From sequence record NC_055733.1: a stretch of DNA of 64,000 nt; one strand, 5' to 3'. The translations under genes were made by a program, and so were the position numbers. Shown here piece by piece: positions 3,373 through 47,210 of the stretch (positions are counted from its first letter, which is position 1; each line of letters starts with the position of its first letter). Below the pieces are notes generated by a model. It was not told the origin of the DNA and made no database searches. It worked only from the letters and a program-made list of their open reading frames with translations.

Positions 3373-3401
3373 ATTCTACACTTTGAAAAAGAGGGTGTCA
3401 A
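3373..3401 (-). promoter_or_regulatory. sigma70-type early promoter TTGACA-N17-TAGAAT
   Basis: Minus strand reads TTGACAccctctttttcaaagtgTAGAAT upstream of the CYTH gene. Confidence 0.75.
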
Positions 3402-3408
3402 CCCTCTT
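3385..3408 (-). terminator. intrinsic terminator after topoisomerase gene
   Basis: aagaggg-ttgaca-ccctctt followed by ttt on the minus strand. Confidence 0.65.
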
Positions 3409-5238
3409 CCTCTTCAAAAACGATATCATCATCGAAACCAAGCCATTTCTTGCGCTTGTGTTCGTCGTCGCCAAATAGCATTTCCAACATTTCGGCAGTT
3501 TGATCGTCGATAACAACTTGTTCCAACACGAGATTTTCAATACATTGTTTGTATTCGCAATCATCGCCCTCAACAGTCAAAGAACCCAGTCCTTTGATGT
3601 GTCGATGTGTCCACTTGCCGTCGAACTTCTTGGCTCTAAACTCGTCGCGAGAATAGCTCCAATCAGTCTTCTTGCCGTTTGTGCTGATATACTCAGGAGT
3701 CCGAACAATGTAAATTCGTCCTTGATCGAACCAATGTGGCCAATACTTGTAGAAAAACGCAATAGCCAACATAGCGATAGAACCCTTACCGTCTTGATCC
3801 GCGTCTGTCATGATAGCAATTTCGCTATATGCGGGCGCTTCTTTCGAACGGAGTTCTACGTTGAGAATACCAAGTAGATCTGCAATCTCTTTGTTTTTCA
3901 ACACTTCATGATCAGGCAAATTCCATACGTTCAGCATCTTACCACGCAGGGGATACGAGCCTTGTGTTTCTTCGTTGCGGAATCGAGTGAACGGACCAAT
4001 AGCCGAATCACCTTCTGCAAGGAACAACATAGTTTTAACTCTACCTAGACCAGCCGCTGCAACGTGTTTAGCTACGTTTGCTTTCTTTGCTTTCTTCTGG
4101 CTTTAGTTGCCGCGGCTTTATCTGCCGCTTCTTTCTTTGCCAGCGCAGACGCAATAATCGGGTCAATCACTTCTGGAGTTTTCAGAATCTTGCGAGCAAG
4201 AGCCTTATAATCCAAATTCATATGGTCACGAATCTGTGCCCATGGAGAACTCAGTCGCTCTTTTGTCTGACCGTCATACTTCGGCGCTACCAGATTACGA
4301 ATAAACAAGCCAATAAGCAAGCATTCTTTGATACGAGCCTTATTGATTTCGATCTTGTGCTGACGCTTGATCATCGGAATCAGTTCGTCGCTCAGAGAGT
4401 CCAACACGCCATAAACGTGATTACCACCCTGCTTTGTGTGAACACCGTTAACAAAGCTCAGTTGTCTGTATTCTTCGGAAGTCGCAAAGAACAAGCTAAC
4501 GTTTTCATCGTTGTGGCTTACAACATCACCAAATTGTGCAGCGAATTTGTTGAACTTACCTTCAACTTTCTTGCCGTTATACTTGAAAGTAATCTGCGGG
4601 AAGTTTACGGCAAGAGTCAACAGTCTGGACTGAATAACTTGCTCGAAATCTTCATCAAGCTGGAACACACCAAATCTGGTGAAATCAGGAACAAACGTTA
4701 CAGTCGTGCCCTTGAATTTACCTGCTTTAGTTGTGTAACTTACTTCATCCGCGTTGTTTGTGCAACGTACAGTTACGGTATTTGTGCCGTTACCGGTTTC
4801 ACCAACGAAACTATCAGAGAAAAAGTTAGTTAACGCGGATCCAACACCGTTTTTACCGATAGTCTTGCGATCTGCGGAGAAGTTAGAGCCAGCGCGAGCG
4901 CGAGTCCAAGCAGCAAGTGGCAACGGTACTTCAACACCTTCCGGAGTGACTACCATACCCTGAGGCAAACCACGACCGTTATCTTTCACTGATACCTGAT
5001 TGTCTTTAATAGACACTTCGATTTGATTGGCATGTTCGAAGTTAGTCCGAATTGCTTCATCCACACAGTTATCGATTACTTCATCCGTGATCTTGACTAG
5101 ACCTGGAATATAACCAATCGGAACAAACTTGCCATCCACAAGAACATCGTGAACCTCTAGGCTCGTACTCCCGATGTACATGTCCGTATTGATAAGGCAG
5201 TGTTCTTTGTCGGATAAAACTTTAAACTCTTGTGACAT
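3398..5238 (-). CDS. 39: DNA topoisomerase II large subunit (gp39+60 fused type), interrupted by an apparent 1-nt deletion near 4100
   Basis: ORF 4072-5238 carries the GHKL ATPase (DEVIDN, DNGRG, GKNGVG). ORF 3398-4030 carries TOPRIM (AEGDSA, PLRGK, MTDADQDG). The -1 frame supplies the expected linker KKAKKANVAKHVAA. Restored length about 613 aa. Confidence 0.93.
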
Positions 5239-11997: not shown

Positions 11998-12753
11998 TTA
12001 AACGTATTTGACTTCTCCTCTTCTTCTCATTTCTTTCCATCGTCTATTTTTTATTTGGAATTTATCTCTAAGCTCCTTTACAGTATCATACATGATTCCG
12101 TTGTATTCAACCTTTCGAGACGAACCGTTCTTAGCTCCTAGTTTGGATTCGGATCTTCTTTTGCTATCGAATTTGACTTGCATGTTTTTACATCTAATAA
12201 GTCGTTTCTCTTTGGGCTCATTCATTCGTGCCGTTCTGGATTTTTCGGACTTGTTTGACTTGATTCTTTCGTTGTATTGCTCTGAAAGATTATTGGATTT
12301 TACATACCAGTCTATGCTTCTTCCGGCGGCACGGAATCCTAGGATGTCGGACGTTTTGGACTTTGATCCACAAACTAGAAATGTTTCCCAACAGTGCTTT
12401 GCCATTTCATCATAGGATTTATAATCTCTTTTCTTTGCCCATGCTTCCTTTATGTTGTCACTTTGGAGCAGTGAGACGTTTTTTCTTATCTCAGCAAATC
12501 TTTTATTTCCTTTATTCTTTGCTGCCCGTGTCATTATGTTTGCTGCAAACCAAAGTTCCCTAATGCCATATATCCTAGCAAGTAATAGATGCGCTATGTA
12601 GTGTTGTTCTGGTCGCATTTCAACTAGATTATCAGGATTGTCTAACCCTCCTATACATTTTGGAATAATATGATGCGTCTCAGTGTAAACACCCGCATTG
12701 TTTTGTGATTTGCACTTTTCTATTAGTTTATCATAAATGTTTTTGTAATTCAT
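11998..12753 (-). mobile_element. free-standing HNH (Mob-like) homing endonuclease gene
   Basis: ETHHIIPKCIGG-DNPDNLV-EQHYIAHLLL HNH motif; AT-rich; inserted directly after uvsX. Confidence 0.88.
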
Positions 12754-23731: not shown

Positions 23732-23760
23732 ATGATACATCAAGGTCAGCGAGTAGTCAA
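23732..23760 (-). promoter_or_regulatory. early promoter TTGACT-N17-TATCAT for gene 47
   Basis: Spacing and SD GAGG downstream. Confidence 0.65.
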
Positions 23761-23763
23761 CAT

Positions 23764-23881
23764 GTGCGCGGCACTTCGAGCGTAGCGAGACAAAACAAAA
23801 TCTCTTATAGATCTTTAATGAGAATCTATTTTGTCTTCCTTAAGGTAATCAATGAGTTAGCTTCGCGGTGGCTTGCCACTT
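23764..23881 (+). repeat. dispersed structured intergenic element, copy 1
   Basis: 23797-23866 is the exact reverse complement of 39880-39949; flanked by hairpins and GAGCGTAGCGA. Confidence 0.93.
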
Positions 23882-23890
23882 ACCATACGA

Positions 23891-23911
23891 AAAAGCCACC
23901 CGAAGGTGGCT
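23891..23911 (-). terminator. UUCG terminator after the P-loop gene (identical to 24533-24553)
   Basis: agccacc-ttcg-ggtggct-ttt. Confidence 0.85.
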
Positions 23912-24474
23912 CAAATGTCAAGCGTCTTAGCTTTGATGTATCCAGTTTGTTCGATGTACTGTTCCAACTCTTCTTTCGTCCACCGCTCTTTGTCAAGAGA
24001 AAGAACTTCCTTGATTTTTTCCTGATACTTCGTTCCCATAACGTCGTAATCTTTTCCGCATCGATTCTCATATCTCTGTCTTGCTAATGCTTCATCAATA
24101 GGAAACTCTACCAACACGAAATCGTATTTAAGTCGCTTATACTCAATAACAGGTTTATGGCCGTCCAAAATAACATACTCATATCCCATAGATTCGAGTT
24201 GTTCTAAAGAATATTGTAATGCACTATAAAATTGGACAGCAGGAGTTGTTTCGAAGCAATGATATGTATGATTTGAACTCCTACATTTCTTATTTCGATC
24301 ATATGCTCCTATTGCACAAATCTTATCGTTGAACTTGGTATAACTAACCGTTGCTCCTTTCGGAGAAGGACAATCTATTTTATTTCTTGCATCCGGATTG
24401 AATTTATCTACAAGCGAATACATATAGGTAGTTTTTCCTGCGCCAGGAATACCTAATAGCATTATTACTCTCAT
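23911..24474 (-). CDS. P-loop NTPase / nucleotide-kinase-like protein
   Basis: Walker A GIPGAGKT, hydrophobic VILDG and lid-like ARQRYENR; AT-rich. Confidence 0.75.
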   Translation of the reverse strand: MRVIMLLGIPGAGKTTYMYSLVDKFNPDARNKIDCPSPKGATVSYTKFNDKICAIGAYDRNKKCRSSNHTYHCFETTPAVQFYSALQYSLEQLESMGYEYVILDGHKPVIEYKRLKYDFVLVEFPIDEALARQRYENRCGKDYDVMGTKYQEKIKEVLSLDKERWTKEELEQYIEQTGYIKAKTLDI

Positions 24475-24502
24475 GATACCTCTTTTAGTTTTTCATAACC
24501 TA

Positions 24503-24532
24503 ATTATGGCACACTTTATTTGAATAGTAAAC
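24503..24532 (-). promoter_or_regulatory. early promoter TTTACT-N17-CATAAT
   Basis: Between the upstream terminator and the P-loop gene SD. Confidence 0.6.
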
Positions 24533-24553
24533 AAAAGCCACCCGAAGGTGGCT
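24533..24553 (-). terminator. UUCG terminator (identical to 23891-23911)
   Basis: aaaagccacccgaaggtggct on the plus strand. Confidence 0.85.
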
Positions 24554-24560
24554 ATATTTA

Positions 24561-24959
24561 TTAAAACATCTTCGCTATTTGTTGGATCGAGATATGGAAC
24601 ACCAGCTTCAATTTTTAACACATACGTGATATTTGTTGCTGTATCCAGAATTTCATCCTGCTTAATTGCTTCTTCAACGAGTTTATCACCGACAACAACG
24701 CGACGCTTGCCGTCATTCGTTGCTGGTTTAGCGAGAGCTCCTACCATATCGGCAGTATAGTCGCCAGCTTGCGGAAGAACGTTACCGTTTCTGTTATTGA
24801 ACGACGAAACGTTAGCAGGCTTAGTACCCTCTGCCAAAATACCAGCAACTCGTGGGTGTAAATTTTTGGATTTTAAACTGAGTGCCAACAGGAATACCAG
24901 TAGCAGCGTTCAGAGGAATCCATGCTTTACCAACAATCACGTTTGGGATTGTCTGCCAT
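24561..24959 (-). pseudogene. fibre/decoration-like gene broken by about 3 apparent +1 shifts (decay or assembly error)
   Basis: SD AGGAG and ATG at 24959. The pieces read MA|TIPNVIVGKAWIPLNAATGIPVGTQFKIQ|NLHPR...VSSFNNRNGNVLPQAGDYTADMVGA...YVLKIEAGVPYL; the last frame runs through the terminator. Confidence 0.55.
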
Positions 24960-24995
24960 TTTAAATCTCCTATGTTTTATGTTATTTAACAAAAC

Positions 24996-25020
24996 AAAAA
25001 GGGAGCCGAAGCTCCCTTTT
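24996..25020 (-). terminator. UUCG terminator after a-gt.4-like gene
   Basis: aaagggagc-ttcg-gctcccttttt. Confidence 0.8.
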
Positions 25021-26216: not shown

Positions 26217-27656
26217 CTAAGGACGAATTGTAGAAACCCAATCTCGGACCATTTTAACATGCTCCGGTTGTATAATGTCAAGCTTAAAATCCAATTTTCT
26301 GCACCAGCGATAGAACTTTCCTTGTTCTTCTTTTGACAACTCAAACATGGTGCCAAACGTGACTTTCTTCTTTCTTGGTGTAGTTTCTTTCTTACGCTCT
26401 TTGCGTTCTGGACCACTCACCATATGATCGGTATCAATCTTTGCCTCTGGTAGATATCTCGATTTCAGATATTCAGCGGCTCGCATATCTGGAACGATTA
26501 GCGTCACTTTCCATTTCGAATGCTGATTTCGAATATCGGTTCGCAAACAAAGCTGGAACACAGGCTCAAGATATTTCGATACCAGATAAGCGTCGATTAG
26601 TTTGTTTGTGTCCATATTATGGCAACTCGACAAGCATTTAAGCAACTCTATTTGCCATGGCATTGGGTTATAGCTGAATAACGCTACCGCAGTCGTATGG
26701 CTCATGTAACTATTAAGTCCATGTGGATTATAAGCTACTCTGTGCCCCACTTTCAGTGCCGCTCTATAGCTGTTCGTTGTATAGATGAACGGACTTATTC
26801 CAACCAAGTCGTAAACAACGTCCTTGACTTTGTTATAAACGCTTTCACCGTTGACGTCCTTATCTGCCGCATATCTAGACCATATGCCGTCATAAACGGG
26901 AATAATCTCAACTCGATTTGAGTTCGGATACTGAATGAAATCCAGCTTCTTCATTAGCGGACTTGTTTTAAACTTCCAGCCACAAAAGTCTTTGAGTACA
27001 ACTCCGGTAAACGTTTCTCTAAAGTTAGCACAAGCGATTGTGATCTTATCGAACTTGTTCCACTTTTGAGTTGTGCTATCATCGATGAAATATACCACAT
27101 TATCTTTGACGATAACGGGAATACCCTGCAACAACGAGCGAGCCAACGAGAAAACGGAGCTTGAAACAACATCATGACCATATAGACCGTCTGTTGCTAT
27201 CTTGTTTAGTTTTTCTCTATGATCTTCATCCAGCGTCATTCTACCGTCTTCGATCTTACAGTATTTTCCAATAAAGTCAAGGTTGTCCGTGAACTTTAAT
27301 TGATTCAACTGCACAAAATCAGGCACTTCGTCAATATACAATTCGTGACCACTCAGATCTTCATAATCTGGATATGTCAACAATGCGGCGTGAGTAATAA
27401 ACAACACTCGATAATTGCCAGCACTTTCTTTGATTACCTCAGCCACGCTTTTGCTTCTACTAACATGATCCGAGTCGATGATAATACTATCATTTTCTCC
27501 TCCCAAGTTGTTATAGAAGTCATAACTTTGTTGTGATAGTTGACAACTAATTGACGCAATCACACAAGGCTTTTTATTCTTTCTAACATGAGTCAGAATT
27601 GCTTTTGTCTTGCCAGCAGCAGGAACTGCCTGTAGAATCTCAACGTTTAATGCCAT
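26217..27656 (-). CDS. SF2-helicase-like / origin-binding-like protein (479 aa)
   Basis: Walker A AVPAAGKT, FITH, Walker B LYIDEVP, ACANF and FQLCLRTDIR; basic C-terminal tail. Confidence 0.72.
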   Translation of the reverse strand: MALNVEILQAVPAAGKTKAILTHVRKNKKPCVIASISCQLSQQSYDFYNNLGGENDSIIIDSDHVSRSKSVAEVIKESAGNYRVLFITHAALLTYPDYEDLSGHELYIDEVPDFVQLNQLKFTDNLDFIGKYCKIEDGRMTLDEDHREKLNKIATDGLYGHDVVSSSVFSLARSLLQGIPVIVKDNVVYFIDDSTTQKWNKFDKITIACANFRETFTGVVLKDFCGWKFKTSPLMKKLDFIQYPNSNRVEIIPVYDGIWSRYAADKDVNGESVYNKVKDVVYDLVGISPFIYTTNSYRAALKVGHRVAYNPHGLNSYMSHTTAVALFSYNPMPWQIELLKCLSSCHNMDTNKLIDAYLVSKYLEPVFQLCLRTDIRNQHSKWKVTLIVPDMRAAEYLKSRYLPEAKIDTDHMVSGPERKERKKETTPRKKKVTFGTMFELSKEEQGKFYRWCRKLDFKLDIIQPEHVKMVRDWVSTIRP

Positions 27657-32510: not shown

Positions 32511-32580
32511 GATTTGTTCCTCTCGTTTAGATGTGTCCATATTATCAGAACGATACCAAGTGTCAACACATTTTGGAAAT

Positions 32581-32604
32581 AAAAAATCCGCCCGAAGGCG
32601 GATT
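32581..32604 (-). terminator. UUCG terminator after nrdB (same stem as 43803-43824)
   Basis: atccgcc-ttcg-ggcggat-ttttt. Confidence 0.85.
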
Positions 32605-33786: not shown

Positions 33787-36021
33787 TTAGACCTTGCACG
33801 TCTCGCATTCGGAAGAAGTATCTTCTGTGCCGTCTGCGCCGTCGCGAGTATTAGAATAATACAGTGATTTAACACCATGTTTCTGTGCTCTTGACATATC
33901 TTTCAATACGACTTTCATCGGGATCTTCTCACCCGGATACACAGCAGGATCATAATAAGTATTCGCACTAATCATTTGATCCACAAACTTCTGCATAATA
34001 GCTACAATGTCCAAGTAACCCTTCATGCCGCGTTTAGTCATCTGCCAAGCTGTTTCATACTCGCTACCAAGCATGTCTACCTCAGGCACTAGCTGATTAA
34101 ACACACCATCTTTTGATTGCTTGGTACTCACTAGGCCGCGTGGTGGCTCAATACCGTTTGTGCTGTTGGTGATCTGTGAACTACTCTCACATGGCATAAA
34201 TGCGCTTAGAGTATCGTTTCGCAATCCGTGCTTTTTGATCTCAGAACGTAGCCATTCCCAATCCATTTTCAGATCATTCGGAACGATATTATCAACGTTT
34301 TTGTTATACCAGTCAATCGGCAGCAGGCCATCAGCCCATTTTGTCTTATGATGCCACTCGTTTGCACCGCGTTCTTTCGCCAGCTCCATAGACGCTACCA
34401 AGTTCGCAAACTGCATCATTTCCATGGTGCGGTGAACAAGCTTGTTTGCATTGCCGCTAGAGTAGTTAACAAAATTCTTCGCCAAGAAATAAGCAAAGTT
34501 TGTTACACCAATACCCAATGCGCGACGCTTCTTAGCTGCCAGTGCTTGAACAACTGGATAATCCTGATAGTCAAGCAAGTTATCGAGTGCGCGAACAGCA
34601 GCACGAGCCACGTTTAGGAAGTCTTCATAACCCTCAATTGCACCGAGATTATATGCTGCTAAAGTGCAGAGCGCCACCTCCCCGGACCCGTCTTTCTTGA
34701 CTGGGTATGTGGGCAAGGCAATTTCAATGCAAAGGTTGGACTGTCGAATCGGCTCTTTGTACGGAGTAGCCGAGTTAACGTTATCAACGAACATCGGATA
34801 AATGCGACCGGTACCAGTTCTTTCTTGTGCGAACAGATTGAACAACTCAGAGGCTTTGATACGCTTCTTACGACACCAAGGTTCATTTTCCAACATTTCG
34901 TACATTTCTTTGAACTTCACTGGATCAGAATAGAACAGATTGTAAAGCTCGCCGTTTTGAACGTCCGGACTAAAGAGCGTGATATAGTCGTCATTTTTCA
35001 GACGCTCGAAAAACAGCTTGTTGATTTGGATACCGTAGTCAAGCTGACGAATTCGATTTTCTTCCACGCCCTTGTTGTTTTTCAAAACAAGGATTTTTTC
35101 AACTTCAAGATGCCACATCGGATAGTAAAGAGTAGCAGCACCGCCGCGAACACCACCCTGTGAGCAACTTTTTACCGCAGTCTGGAAATGTTTCCAGAAC
35201 GGAATAATACCAGTGTGACGAACTTCACCACTTCGAATGCGAGAGCCTTCGGCACGAATAGCGCCACCGTTGATGCCGATACCAGCTCGTTTGCTGATAT
35301 AGTCAACGATTGAACTTGCGGTAGCGTTAATGCTATCGAGTTCATCACCACATTCAATCTTGACGCATGAGCTAAATTGACGAGTCGGAGTACGAACACC
35401 AGCAAGAATCGGCGTCGGTAGACTCAGTTTGCCCAAAGAAGTTACGTCATAAAAGTTTTTAACTTTAGCAATTCTATCTGTTTTTTCGTCTTGGTGCAAG
35501 CACATTGCAACAAGCATATACAACATTTGCGGGGTTTCGTACAATTCGCCTGTACTGCGATCTTTCGCCAAATACTTTTCTTTGAATTGCATTACACCAG
35601 CATAAGCCAGATTAAAATCGCGTTCATGTTTGATATAGCTATTCAGCTCATTAAATTCTTCGTCTGTCCACTTAGCGGCAAGATCTTTATCATAGATGCC
35701 GTCTTGTACCAAGTCCAGAGTGTGTCGTTTCAGATGAATCGGATCAAACTGATTATAAACGTCTTTGCGAATAGCGTACATTTGCAGACGAGCAGAAACA
35801 TATTGATAATCAGATTGTTCAATAGAGATTCGATCCGCCGCAAACTTGATTGCCAGCTTTTGAATGTCTTTTGTACTCATGCCGTCAGTGATTGAAGGCA
35901 TAATACCACTCATGATTTCGTTTGGATCGATTCGAGTTCCAGCGGTGGCGAACCCAAGAATTTTCAACAGCTTGTTGGAATCAAAATTCTCAGTTATACC
36001 ACTTGATTTTCTTACCAGCAT
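33787..36021 (-). CDS. nrdA: class Ia RNR alpha subunit
   Basis: ATP cone, PTP, FSSC, SNLCIEI, NSTNGIEP, SLYY and C-terminal CETC. Confidence 0.97.
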   Translation of the reverse strand: MLVRKSSGITENFDSNKLLKILGFATAGTRIDPNEIMSGIMPSITDGMSTKDIQKLAIKFAADRISIEQSDYQYVSARLQMYAIRKDVYNQFDPIHLKRHTLDLVQDGIYDKDLAAKWTDEEFNELNSYIKHERDFNLAYAGVMQFKEKYLAKDRSTGELYETPQMLYMLVAMCLHQDEKTDRIAKVKNFYDVTSLGKLSLPTPILAGVRTPTRQFSSCVKIECGDELDSINATASSIVDYISKRAGIGINGGAIRAEGSRIRSGEVRHTGIIPFWKHFQTAVKSCSQGGVRGGAATLYYPMWHLEVEKILVLKNNKGVEENRIRQLDYGIQINKLFFERLKNDDYITLFSPDVQNGELYNLFYSDPVKFKEMYEMLENEPWCRKKRIKASELFNLFAQERTGTGRIYPMFVDNVNSATPYKEPIRQSNLCIEIALPTYPVKKDGSGEVALCTLAAYNLGAIEGYEDFLNVARAAVRALDNLLDYQDYPVVQALAAKKRRALGIGVTNFAYFLAKNFVNYSSGNANKLVHRTMEMMQFANLVASMELAKERGANEWHHKTKWADGLLPIDWYNKNVDNIVPNDLKMDWEWLRSEIKKHGLRNDTLSAFMPCESSSQITNSTNGIEPPRGLVSTKQSKDGVFNQLVPEVDMLGSEYETAWQMTKRGMKGYLDIVAIMQKFVDQMISANTYYDPAVYPGEKIPMKVVLKDMSRAQKHGVKSLYYSNTRDGADGTEDTSSECETCKV

Positions 36022-39775: not shown

Positions 39776-39862
39776 GATGTTCTCCGTAGTTGATAATTGG
39801 AGTATAGCGATTGGATTCCTACTGTCAAACATTATTTCGATCAAATAGTAATCTACTCCAGA

Positions 39863-39989
39863 AAGTCGCGCCAGCGACTGCGAAGCTAACTCATTGATTA
39901 CCTTAAGGAAGACAAAATAGATTCTCATTAAAGATCTATAAGAGATTTTATTTTGTCTTTGTTCGCTACGCTCACAAGTGCTGGCGCAC
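39863..39989 (-). repeat. dispersed structured intergenic element, copy 2 (inverted relative to copy 1)
   Basis: 70-bp core identical to 23797-23866; equivalent terminal hairpins. Confidence 0.93.
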
Positions 39990-40073
39990 GTTACCAGCGA
40001 TTCTATGATCTTCTAATACGTTCATATCAGTATACCGTAGGAATCGCTGGTACGTTGATCCACAGCGTTTGGC

Positions 40074-43715: not shown

Positions 43716-43802
43716 GATGTTTTCCTCAGTTGAATTCGTTGATTGGCTTCAATGAGGACATAATATCAGGTAGATCCCAAACGTCAACAACTTTTTGGAA
43801 AT

Positions 43803-43824
43803 AAAAATCCGCCCGAAGGCGGAT
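43803..43824 (-). terminator. UUCG terminator (same stem as 32581-32604)
   Basis: atccgcc-ttcg-ggcggat-tttt. Confidence 0.85.
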
Positions 43825-45465: not shown

Positions 45466-45484
45466 AATGTATTCCTCATTCGTT

Positions 45485-45534
45485 ATTTGATAGAGCCATT
45501 ATCGCATGGCTCTTAGCGGTAGTCAACAACTTTT
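45485..45534 (-). repeat. 50-bp promoter/stem-loop cassette, copy 1
   Basis: Identical to 45844-45893; contains TTGACT -35 and an 8-bp stem agagccat/atggctct over the -10. Confidence 0.9.
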
Positions 45535-45821
45535 TATTCGGCTTTACAAATCATTTTGAGTTGCATAACCTTTTCAGAATCACCAGCACCAGACAACCAA
45601 GCGGTGTGATCCCATTGCTCAGTGATAGAAGCGTTGGTAAACATCTTAGAACGAGACAGGTCGCGCTCGATTGCTTGCAGTGTGCCAACGTAGTCGGAAG
45701 TAACAACAATCATGTTATTGCCTTCACATTTACCATCGAAGTTAACGATGATTTGCACATTACGAACAGAGTATTTGCGAGTTGCGAACAGTGCTTTGAA
45801 TTCAGCGGCTACGTTTTTCAT
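45534..45821 (-). CDS. hypothetical protein (95 aa)
   Basis: Flanked by the two identical cassettes; SD GAGG. Confidence 0.7.
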   Translation of the reverse strand: MKNVAAEFKALFATRKYSVRNVQIIVNFDGKCEGNNMIVVTSDYVGTLQAIERDLSRSKMFTNASITEQWDHTAWLSGAGDSEKVMQLKMICKAE

Positions 45822-45843
45822 GATGTATTCCTCAGTTGTCTTG

Positions 45844-45893
45844 ATTTGATAGAGCCATTATCGCATGGCTCTTAGCGGTAGTCAACAACTTTT
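45844..45893 (-). repeat. 50-bp promoter/stem-loop cassette, copy 2
   Basis: Identical to 45485-45534. Confidence 0.9.
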
Positions 45894-45896
45894 AAA

Positions 45897-46310
45897 TCAA
45901 TCTTCGTAATAATCGTCCATTTCGAGTGGGTAATCCATTCCCCAATCCCATGAGATATTGGATTCAAACTTGATGCCGGTTTGTTTGCACAGTTCACAGT
46001 AACGATCTGCGGTACGCTTGTTGTAGAATGCGCGATGTTTGTTGTACCCGTTCTGGCGTTCTACGTTACAATCCAACAGACTGAAACTATTCAATGCCCG
46101 CAGAGTATCTTGGATTGCTTGAATTTCGCCGTTGCTGTATACCATACGACACGGAACAAACAGAGAATCGGATTTTGAGCCATCAACATAAGTATGGCGC
46201 TCGGGACGACCGGTAATCAGATATTTGGTAACAAAAGAGTTTTCGCCAAGTGCGCTTACATAATAAACAGTCTTACCAGCTTTCAGATTCTTAACAGTTA
46301 CCTTTTTCAT
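45897..46310 (-). CDS. hypothetical protein (137 aa)
   Basis: SD GAGG. Confidence 0.7.
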   Translation of the reverse strand: MKKVTVKNLKAGKTVYYVSALGENSFVTKYLITGRPERHTYVDGSKSDSLFVPCRMVYSNGEIQAIQDTLRALNSFSLLDCNVERQNGYNKHRAFYNKRTADRYCELCKQTGIKFESNISWDWGMDYPLEMDDYYED

Positions 46311-47119: not shown

Positions 47120-47185
47120 TGCCAATCTCCTTGTTTCAATGTGGATATATTAACAGGTTGATTCCAGTTTGCAAGCACTAAAACG

Positions 47186-47210
47186 AAAAAAGCACCCGAA
47201 GGTGCCTTTT
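47186..47210 (-). terminator. UUCG terminator
   Basis: gcacc-ttcg-ggtgc-tttttt. Confidence 0.8.

Follow-up and report, generated by a model that had tools for sequence, protein, structure and literature searches.

Palindromic repeats with a putative IHF box at seven conserved, promoter-adjacent loci of T4-like Aeromonas phages

The window analyzed here, a stretch of 64,000 nucleotides from sequence record NC_055733.1, was matched by megablast to bases 1-64000 of the Aeromonas phage Ah1 record (MG250483.1), whose own coordinates are used for it. Ah1 is a T4-like phage (Straboviridae, Cinqassovirus) with a genome of 221,116 bp. The window harbors two copies of a non-coding element of ~116-200 bp that occurs 6-8 times per genome in Ah1 and in four further phages. 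This is very probably a palindromic element bounded by terminal inverted repeats, carrying a box of the integration host factor (IHF) type and fixed at seven loci next to promoters. Its anatomy, copy number, conservation, changes of orientation, adjacency to promoters and strand-biased pairing were observed directly in these genomes, and its function is tentatively sought at the boundaries between transcription units.

An original prediction, made from the letters of the window, had pointed out two oppositely oriented copies with 70 of 70 identical positions. This identity is exact, with 23797-23866 being the reverse complement of 39880-39949, and it extends by 0 bases on either side, as there is a mismatch at each end. 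With mismatches allowed, a repeat finder reports an inverted repeat of 98 nt at 92% identity (23779-23876 vs 39870-39967). The motif GAGCGTAGCGA was confirmed in each window copy, and the expected hairpins are present as well, both at the 5' side (GTGC-GCG-GCAC, 23764-23774; GTGC-GCCA-GCAC, 39978-39989) and at the 3' side (GTGGC-TT-GCCAC, 23868-23879; GTCGC-TGGC-GCGAC, 39865-39878), the latter pair differing by a double change that preserves the pairing. Each copy is situated between genes and, according to the promoter scan, beside an early promoter. The 23.8-kb copy is found between the Ah1_00028 terminator and the gene 47 early promoter, the 39.9-kb copy between Ah1_00051 and the Ah1_00050 early promoter. 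They face opposite ways relative to transcription, the minus strand carrying all annotated genes of this region and every annotated gene of the window. The description of a selected, multi-copy and structured element that is neither an ordinary promoter nor an ordinary terminator is supported.

Searches of the full genome and of relatives, a check that the prediction had proposed, revealed that the pair represents two of eight copies in Ah1, with 6-8 copies in each of four other phages. The Ah1 copies of the 75-nt core, obtained by BLAST of the element against the assembled genome, are located at 23.8, 39.9, 78.2, 107.8, 108.0, 136.7, 173.5 and 218.6 kb, all of them intergenic and with both orientations represented. 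Aeh1 also carries eight, in the same places and the same orientations; profile searches gave seven copies in phiWae14 and seven in PX29 (nhmmer), where BLAST alone gave three places, and phiAS5 has six. According to tblastx comparison of the flanks, the loci are the same seven in every genome. All seven are occupied in Ah1, Aeh1, PX29 and phiWae14, and phiAS5 is without locus 1 only; no empty site was found. Misassembly and chance are ruled out by more than 30 copies at matching loci in five independently sequenced genomes.

The distribution of the family is narrow. A 34-nt pattern made up of the invariant columns only retrieved exactly 29 copies from four of these phages in IMG/VR, and nothing else, without a false positive. 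The core pattern had 0 matches in 185,579 bacterial and archaeal species genomes, and a single metagenome match of the strict invariant pattern is located inside a terminase-like open reading frame (ORF) and is attributable to chance. Given that searches of IMG/VR, species genomes and metagenomes yielded nothing beyond them, the family is specific to three genera of T4-like Aeromonas phages, namely Cinqassovirus, Angelvirus and Chrysonvirus, and the 34-nt pattern can serve to mark these phages cleanly. Distant relatives were also sought with a short A/T-rich pattern, and its 40 loci were all rejected as chance. No description of the family was found in the searchable literature.

The architecture was derived from an alignment of 30 copies (Ah1 8, Aeh1 8, phiWae14 7 and PX29 7), which spans 84 nt without any gap. 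The invariant columns read AGA.AA.A.AAA.T..CTTATA...CTT..ATGA..AT.TA..TT.TCTT, followed by 11 free positions and then by (A/T)(T/A)CAA-NNNN-TTAGC. The center is an imperfect palindrome of 49 nt, with 17-nt arms and a 3-bp inner stem around a variable apex. It contains 76-80% A+T, i.e., a GC content of 20-24% against a genome mean of 42%, which places it among the lowest 0.1-0.5% of 50-nt windows. The apex reads GATC (within AGATCT) in all eight Aeh1 copies and in both window copies (23809-23812 and 39934-39937), and is replaced by ATA, TAT or AAT in four of the eight Ah1 copies (108.0, 136.7, 173.5 and 218.6 kb); it can be speculated that such losses reflect avoidance of a GATC-specific restriction or methylation system. 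A late promoter in the apex (TATAnATC) was considered and rejected, the apex triplet being the most variable part and the actual late motif being CTAAATA.

Terminal inverted repeats of ~20-25 bp, themselves GC hairpins with GNA-type loops, close the element on both sides. Read from the outside in, the ends follow A(C/T)(T/C)GCG, a GC hairpin and GCTA(A/G) in 29 of 30 copies on the right and in 24 of 30 on the left; in the phiWae14 copy at locus 8, for example, TCGAAGACGGCGACGCCAGTCGCTA stands opposite TCGAAGATCGCGGCGTAGCCGCTA. Taken by themselves, the per-copy alignment scores of these repeats are weakly significant. The hairpin stems vary and yet always pair, either as 5-bp stems with double changes (GCGGC/GCCGC, GCGAC/GTCGC, GCGCC/GGCGC) or as mini-hairpins GC-GNA-GC, and most loops are GNA or GNNA. 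The GCGAAGC mini-hairpin emphasized in the original prediction does occur in both window copies, as its reverse complement GCTTCGC, but in only 11 of the 30 family copies. The proposed CS-6 motif TAGCG(A/T) likewise turned out not to be family-wide, since it is found on either strand in only 14 of 30 copies and most copies have GCGTAGCC instead. The hallmark of plasmid single-strand origins of the ssoA type, CS-6 in a hairpin loop, is therefore not a property of this family. What its copies generally have in common is a GC hairpin whose loop is of the GNA type, rather than CS-6 or GCGAAGC.

Beyond the right end, most copies share an extension of ~30 nt, TTTCTGGA(A)G...TACTATTTG(A/T)AC, which includes a Shine-Dalgarno-like GGAG. 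At the 136.7-kb copy this extension constitutes the Shine-Dalgarno sequence and ATG-AAC start of the gene Ah1_00232, in all four genomes examined. A RegB cleavage site at the right-flank GGAG was rejected, as by eye it does not fit the consensus GGAGRAYARAA (PMC3014915).

The invariant CAA-N4-TTAGC box fits the IHF consensus WATCAANNNNTTR as cited in PMC10380432, with CAA and TTA unvarying in 30 of 30 copies and variation at the four N positions. An exact WATCAANNNNTTR is present in 22 of 30 copies (8/8 in Ah1, 8/8 in Aeh1, 4/7 in phiWae14 and 2/7 in PX29). The Ah1 genome contains 33 such matches where ~16 are expected, and eight of the 33 are within the elements, which make up 0.37% of the genome. 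A T-rich palindrome arm is located 12-20 nt upstream of the box. By this sequence fit the box is a candidate IHF site.

Adjacency to promoters is a further constant of the family. The left end is found ~3-30 nt from a promoter firing outward, which is an early promoter at locus 1 in all genomes, at locus 2 in phiWae14 and phiAS5 and at locus 4 in PX29, phiWae14 and phiAS5, and a late promoter (CTAAATA) at loci 3 and 6 in all genomes and at locus 5 in PX29 and phiWae14; in Ah1 and Aeh1 the gene 26 late promoter is ~130 nt past the element end. Reversed elements have their right end 25-45 nt upstream of an early promoter. The arrangement at locus 1 is the same in Aeh1 and PX29, and phiWae14 has a GTTTACA -35 directly beside the core. 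The late-promoter calls are considered sound because CTAAATA precedes 8 of 27 late genes and ATAAATA two more, against a background of 0.014 per 70 nt. On its opposite side the element borders on the 3' end of the gene before it, frequently together with that gene's terminator. In the promoter scan all promoters were outside the element, and no conserved promoter of the sigma-70 type was found inside it or reading into it. An internal reverse-strand candidate, TTGATT-N18-TAGATT, seemed conserved on visual inspection but was discarded, given that its -35 is the complement of the IHF box and its -10 becomes TAGATC, with the final T lost, in most PX29 copies; a right-flank promoter reading inward showed no consistent site.

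The seven loci are 16-45 kb apart with a coefficient of variation (CV) of 0.28. Compared with seven random points on a 221-kb circle, a CV this low has P = 0.0016 and a minimum gap this large P = 0.014, figures that stem from a single, post-hoc observation, the phages being syntenic.

The family is ancient, positionally fixed, homogenized within genomes and occasionally inverted or tandemly duplicated in place, and we state this with high confidence. Comparison of the whole genomes of Aeh1, phiWae14 and PX29 revealed no insertion polymorphism between relatives and, with the junctions undefined for want of an empty site, no detectable target-site duplication; an imperfect flanking direct repeat of ~20 nt was noticed by eye at the Ah1 218.6-kb copy. 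Orientation has flipped in place between lineages at loci 2 and 4, with collinear flanks. The 39.9-kb locus has one orientation in Ah1, Aeh1 and PX29 and the opposite one in phiAS5 and phiWae14, and the 218.6-kb locus has one in Ah1 and Aeh1 and the opposite one in PX29, phiAS5 and phiWae14. A tandem second copy is located between genes 54 and 26 in Ah1 and Aeh1. Between these two phages the element is nearly invariant, whereas the adjacent intergenic DNA shows substitutions and indels. Copies within a genome carry common lineage-specific substitutions. All seven PX29 copies, for instance, have AGAGAAGATA...TATCTTCTCT where Ah1 has AGACAAAATA...TATTTTGTCT, a difference of two double changes that keep the pairs intact (C-G to G-C and A-T to G-C). 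Different types of tail and of terminal module occur in mosaic combinations from copy to copy. This sharing and mosaicism point to gene conversion, co-evolution with a binding partner, or both. The earlier expectation of selection or gene conversion was right on both counts, as the core has no gaps and varies little among the three genera.

When the window copies are folded at minimum energy, the left and right terminal modules of each are base-paired, so that the long hairpin is enclosed between them. At 23.8 kb the z-score of the fold is -2.8 on the reverse strand and -0.9 on the forward strand; the corresponding values at 39.9 kb are -5.3 and -3.8. Non-Watson-Crick cells of the long stem are overwhelmingly A-C on the forward strand, corresponding to G-U on the reverse strand (23 cells vs 2), and the reverse strand has G-U pairs at seven stem positions. 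On the reverse strand 90.6% of cells are paired, with 10 further pair types (reached in 13 of 500 shuffles) and a covariation score of 0.129, compared with 84.4%, four further pair types (447 of 500 shuffles) and 0.070 on the forward strand. In 26 of 30 copies it is the reverse strand that gives the more stable 49-nt hairpin. A strand asymmetry of the whole element in folding energy was rejected, its mean difference being the same as in genome-wide control windows; the asymmetry resides in the 49-nt stem alone. The reverse strand is the mRNA sense at the ancestral orientation of loci 1-5. Taken together, there is moderate evidence that some single-stranded form, either RNA or displaced DNA, matters.

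Given these properties, we tentatively read the element as a domesticated cis-acting boundary module between transcription units, analogous to Correia elements and BIMEs, which would act on the DNA and, when transcribed, as a hairpin RNA; we hold this reading with more doubt than confidence. The box would be bound by host IHF, and the resulting bend would be placed next to the easily melted palindrome and immediately upstream of the early or late promoter found at one end. Read-through from the upstream unit would yield an RNA that folds into a ~20-bp hairpin closed by the paired ends, with the reverse strand as the better folder. Such a hairpin could stop, process (e.g., through RNase III) or stabilize the upstream message and insulate the next promoter.

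Several points weigh against this proposal. All of its functional steps, i.e., binding of IHF, the effect on transcription and the processing of RNA, are ones that we infer. The consensus for IHF is a short one, and eight of the 30 copies, most of them from PX29, have a degenerate form of it (TTCAA or TACAA). At locus 1 the element is preceded by a strong terminator in all four genomes carrying that locus, and consequently little read-through RNA may reach the element there. The phiAS5 and phiWae14 copies contain uncompensated mismatches in the long stem, and the stem is thus not strictly maintained. No sequence relation to Correia elements or host REP sequences was found, the sole scan being one with an 18-mer of the terminal repeat; this terminal-hairpin 18-mer gave 16 chance-level matches, none in Aeromonas, and a host origin of the terminal module (REP/BIME) was rejected on that basis. 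Finally, a plain boundary module leaves unexplained the strong conservation of the 75-nt core, including its unpaired positions, and the even spacing of the loci, both of which suggest a sequence-specific partner or a role at the scale of the genome.

It is these last features that a second explanation, dispersed origin-like sites, accounts for, along with A+T content and strand-biased pairing. According to this possible but rather doubtful view, the A+T-rich palindrome is an unwinding element with an IHF bend, the GC/GNA hairpins on the displaced reverse strand stabilize the opening or load a T4-type primosome, and the seven sites start replication or recombination-dependent replication. The extreme A+T content of the palindrome, the spacing of the loci, the independence of orientation and a strand-biased wobble pairing that fits the folding of one displaced strand are all consistent with it. 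An IHF-type box beside an A+T-rich part is also found at oriC (PMC10380432). The elements are promoter-adjacent, and in T4 the 5-7 origins each consist of a promoter and an A+T-rich element of ~100 bp (PMC3016281). However, the origins of T4 have no motif in common, and each requires a promoter that transcribes into its unwinding element (PMC3016281), whereas the promoters here point outward, none that is conserved reads inward and PX29 has lost the internal candidate. The helicase partner suggested in the original prediction did not hold up either. The 479-aa protein encoded at 26217-27656 shows no helicase or other known domain in Pfam and NCBIfam and belongs to a PHROG family of unknown function, leaving the origin view with no initiator or helicase partner identified, and the spacing statistic carries the reservation given above. 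The predicted multi-copy origin thus keeps circumstantial support from A+T content, even spacing, the IHF-type box and strand-biased hairpin variation, but lacks the T4-type hallmark of a promoter reading into the A+T-rich part. Somewhat more doubtful still, by analogy, is that the seven elements act as start sites for replication or recombination-dependent replication which may double as promoter-proximal enhancers in the manner of baculovirus hr regions.

An element acting at the RNA level only, with no role as DNA, is unlikely; it would be an intercistronic hairpin of read-through transcripts, used for processing of the RNase III type, for attenuation or for stabilizing 3' ends. The compensatory changes in the terminal hairpins and in the PX29 long stem, the better G-U folding of a reverse strand that is mRNA-sense at most ancestral loci, the z-scores down to -5.3 and the terminator-like 3' hairpin followed by ATTTTTT at PX29 locus 2 would all suit such an RNA. 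Against this, orientation differs among lineages and loci, the unpaired CTTATA, CTTTAATGA and CAA...TTAGC are invariant and the variable spacer has a fixed length, none of the spacing is explained, and the strong terminator upstream of locus 1 stands in the way here too. The original prediction had listed a structured RNA among its alternatives, yet no Rfam family covers the window at gathering thresholds and no dedicated RNA-gene promoter was found. In permissive mode Rfam 15 gave one sub-threshold match (16.3 vs 37.8 bits), and no tRNA or tmRNA is present in the window.

The conserved core might instead be a recognition site for a phage protein that binds all copies as a regulator, nickase partner or former homing apparatus, an idea that we consider distinctly unlikely and for which Ah1_00232 is the best candidate. 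This gene encodes 201 aa on the opposite strand between the neck genes 14 and 15 (L005 36038-36643) and is located beside the locus-6 copy in all lineages, with 60-92% identity. The homology between its translation start and the right-flank extension of most copies is in favor of a connection. The protein has three conserved Cys/His modules resembling zinc ribbons, its PHROG matches to 'endonuclease' (8e-11) and 'HNH endonuclease' (1e-4) align to the middle of much longer profiles, and its relationship to phage HNH endonucleases concerns their non-catalytic part. In a database of 5.8 billion proteins, full-length homologues were found only in element-carrying phages. The same symmetric change in both palindrome arms of all PX29 copies could moreover reflect co-evolution with a binding protein, although gene conversion explains it equally well. 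Adjacency and co-distribution are weak arguments, as many genes without known relatives are distributed alike, and no DNA-binding fold was confirmed, with no match among solved structures and a structure model (pLDDT 54) too poor for use. Ah1_00232 is accordingly treated as a candidate binding partner only. In the same region, PX29 has a gene for a Seg-like GIY-YIG endonuclease between genes 13 and 14.

The MITE-like alternative of the original prediction (MITE, miniature inverted-repeat transposable element) is the best fit in terms of anatomy, given terminal inverted repeats, small size, non-coding character and dispersal in either orientation, to which the tandem duplicate of Ah1 and Aeh1 and the mosaic modules can be added. 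As an explanation of the present state, i.e., a selfish relic without function, disseminated by homing or by a transposase since lost and from then on tolerated in intergenic DNA, it is nevertheless very unlikely. The seven loci are occupied in all three genera with neither insertion polymorphism nor target-site duplication found, the core is under strong purifying selection while the flanking intergenic DNA changes and carries indels, and the compact genomes of T4-like phages shed useless DNA. MITEs, repeats with inverted-repeat ends, are also very rare in viral genomes, with ~0.01% of sequences in a survey whose main text makes no mention of Aeromonas (PMC11602168).

A small RNA gene or small protein gene in each copy is extremely unlikely, even though the Aeh1 record annotates tiny ORFs over three copies (Aeh1fORF01c, L021 49489-49671; Aeh1hmmORF04c, L024 37049-37153; Aeh1fORF03c, L025 30599-30766), which are probably gene-finder artefacts, and the hairpin ATG opens a frame MRIYFVFLKV..., for this frame has no Shine-Dalgarno sequence or other ribosome-binding site and its variation is not codon-like, the 11-nt block varying at all codon positions and the frames ending at different points, and neither a conserved promoter on either strand nor an Rfam match was found.

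The coordinates of the two window copies and their neighboring signals are listed in Table 1.

Table 1. Parts of the two window copies and adjacent transcription signals (copy 1, 23.8 kb; copy 2, 39.9 kb)
Feature	Position	Strand	Description
Copy 1, left terminal module	23764..23789	+	5' hairpin and a mini-hairpin module, GAGCGTAGCGAG (23778-23789); directly next to the -35 of the gene 47 promoter; pairs with the right module in the fold
Copy 1, A+T-rich imperfect palindrome (49 nt)	23788..23836	+	AGACAAAACAAAATCTC / GAGAATCTATTTTGTCT around a variable apex; GC 24%, lowest 0.5% of the genome's 50-nt windows
Copy 1, spacer (11 nt)	23838..23848	+	variable sequence, constant length in all 30 aligned copies
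Copy 1, candidate IHF box AATCAATGAGTTA	23847..23859	+	exact match to WATCAANNNNTTR (sequence fit)
Copy 1, right terminal module	23860..23879	+	GCTTCGC plus 3' hairpin; inverted counterpart of the left module
Gene 47 early promoter	23732..23760	-	TTGACT-17-TATCAT; fires away from the left end of copy 1
Intrinsic terminator of the upstream gene Ah1_00028	23893..23912	-	C(UUCG)G-type hairpin and T run just beyond the right end of copy 1; repeat family D3
Copy 2, left terminal module	39962..39989	-	5' hairpin plus GAGCGTAGCGAA (39962-39973)
Copy 2, A+T-rich imperfect palindrome (49 nt)	39910..39958	-	GC 22%, lowest 0.2% of windows
Copy 2, candidate IHF box AATCAATGAGTTA	39887..39899	-	sequence match
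Copy 2, right terminal module	39865..39886	-	GCTTCGC plus 3' hairpin; repeats the left module in inverted form (GTGCGCCAGCAC vs GTCGCGCCAGCGAC)
Copy 2, right-flank extension TTTCTGGAGTAGATTACTATTTGATCG	39838..39864	-	common to most copies
Ah1_00050 early promoter	39801..39828	-	TTGACA-16-TATACT; ~36 nt past the right terminal module of copy 2, firing away from the element

Other observations concern the surroundings of the copies. Directly after Ah1_00051 there is a long hairpin, CCAGCGATTC-N37-GAATCGCTGG (window 39994-40050, minus strand), and a sister hairpin, GGAGCGATTC(C)...(G)GAATCGCTCC, is found beside the 218.6-kb copy (Ah1 218.70-218.79 kb) and at the phiAS5 and phiWae14 counterparts (L028 1634-1700); the two may represent a second conserved structured element at gene 3' ends. 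Just beyond the right end of the 23.8-kb copy the gene content differs in all four genomes (window 23911-25020; L021 22534-32100; L026; L027). Aeh1 has ~8.5 kb there, made up of three large ORFs (ORF025c-027c) without counterpart in the others. The element is located at the edge of a hyperplastic block. For Ah1_00028 (23911-24474, minus strand) the PHROG label 'clamp loader of DNA polymerase' looks doubtful, since Pfam gives only a weak N-terminal match of the P-loop, kinase-like type. The early region is rich in cassettes similar to PeSLs, in which an early promoter comes after a terminator hairpin of the C(UUCG)G type (repeat families D1-D3, D5 and D6); their positions include window 32531-32603, 43752-43824, 45480-45539, 45839-45898 and 47131-47207.

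Elsewhere in these genomes, a gene for the HNH homing endonuclease MobE is located between uvsX and Ah1_00017 in Ah1 (11998-12753) and splits nrdA in Aeh1 (L021 42447-43160), nrdA of Ah1 (33787-36021) being intact; because its location differs between the two, this gene has moved between close relatives. The Ah1 record also divides several core genes into two coding sequences (60_1/60_2, 54_1/54_2, 8_1/8_2, 23_1/23_2 and wac_1/2) that are single genes in Aeh1 and PX29. These are located at window 3398-5238 and at Ah1 L005 8154-9141, 22095-23080 and 46478-48090, and represent frameshifts or sequencing errors.

Large lytic phages of three genera have kept this element at the same seven promoter-adjacent sites, unlike a transient passenger, and its core is better conserved than many of their proteins. 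Fixed sites and a conserved core together argue for a cis function that has no name in T4 biology. Should the element be a boundary module served by IHF, a host-factor-dependent layer would be added to T4-type transcription control. Should its copies be start sites, T4-like phages, for which origins without a common motif are otherwise described (PMC3016281), would have a first family of multi-copy origins defined by sequence, and origin choice in such phages would become directly testable with a defined sequence.

Among phages, the closest precedent is the PeSL cassette of the RB49/phi1-type phages, which likewise belongs to the regulatory DNA repeated between genes of T4-like phages, pairs stem-loops with early promoters, marks the boundaries of variable gene blocks and is prone to recombination (PMC2839356). 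It is nevertheless different and simpler, consisting of a promoter and one stem-loop always placed in the direction of transcription, with ~50 copies per genome, whereas the present element has no conserved promoter inside, measures ~120-200 bp, possesses inverted-repeat ends and an A+T palindrome, and occurs in both orientations in only 7-8 copies. The T4 origins oriF and oriG resemble it in being ~100 bp long, A+T-rich, easily unwound and promoter-adjacent, and their number, 5-7 per T4 genome, is close to the seven loci found here; they have no motif in common, however, and their promoter transcribes into the A+T-rich part to supply an R-loop primer (PMC3016281), while the promoters here point away. 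Baculovirus hr regions and herpesvirus palindromic origins are similarly dispersed as repeated, imperfect palindromes around a large viral genome, adjacent to promoters and with proposed roles as both enhancer and origin. The analogy with them is a functional one between unrelated viruses and hosts that share no sequence relation.

Bacterial repeats offer a better match. In BIME-1/RIP of E. coli, a GC-rich palindromic unit, an internal segment with the IHF consensus and an inverted GC-rich unit follow one another in extragenic DNA at the ends of transcription units. The terminal hairpins of the phage element are presumably similar in style to REPs, which we take as a lead rather than a test. 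BIMEs have no counterpart of the large A+T palindrome, and the phage terminal module, as the 18-mer scan indicated, is not a host repeat. Correia elements (CREE) of Neisseria have a conserved core between inverted repeats and promoters at the ends; they are bound by IHF and acted on by RNase III (PMC2649163; PMC2229807). They are bacterial, present in hundreds of copies per genome, polymorphic among strains and flanked by TA target duplications, whereas the phage family is carried by lytic phages in 6-8 copies, without empty sites in three genera, a detectable target duplication or an established sequence relation to CREE. By analogy of design, Correia elements nonetheless appear to be the closest known system, with BIME-1/RIP also close, in that both CREE and the phage element are short and non-coding, have terminal inverted repeats around a core, occupy intergenic positions in either orientation with promoters at or near their ends and an internal IHF-type site, and give a transcript that folds, or for the phage element is predicted to fold, as a long hairpin, which in CREE is a substrate of RNase III (PMC2649163; PMC2229807).

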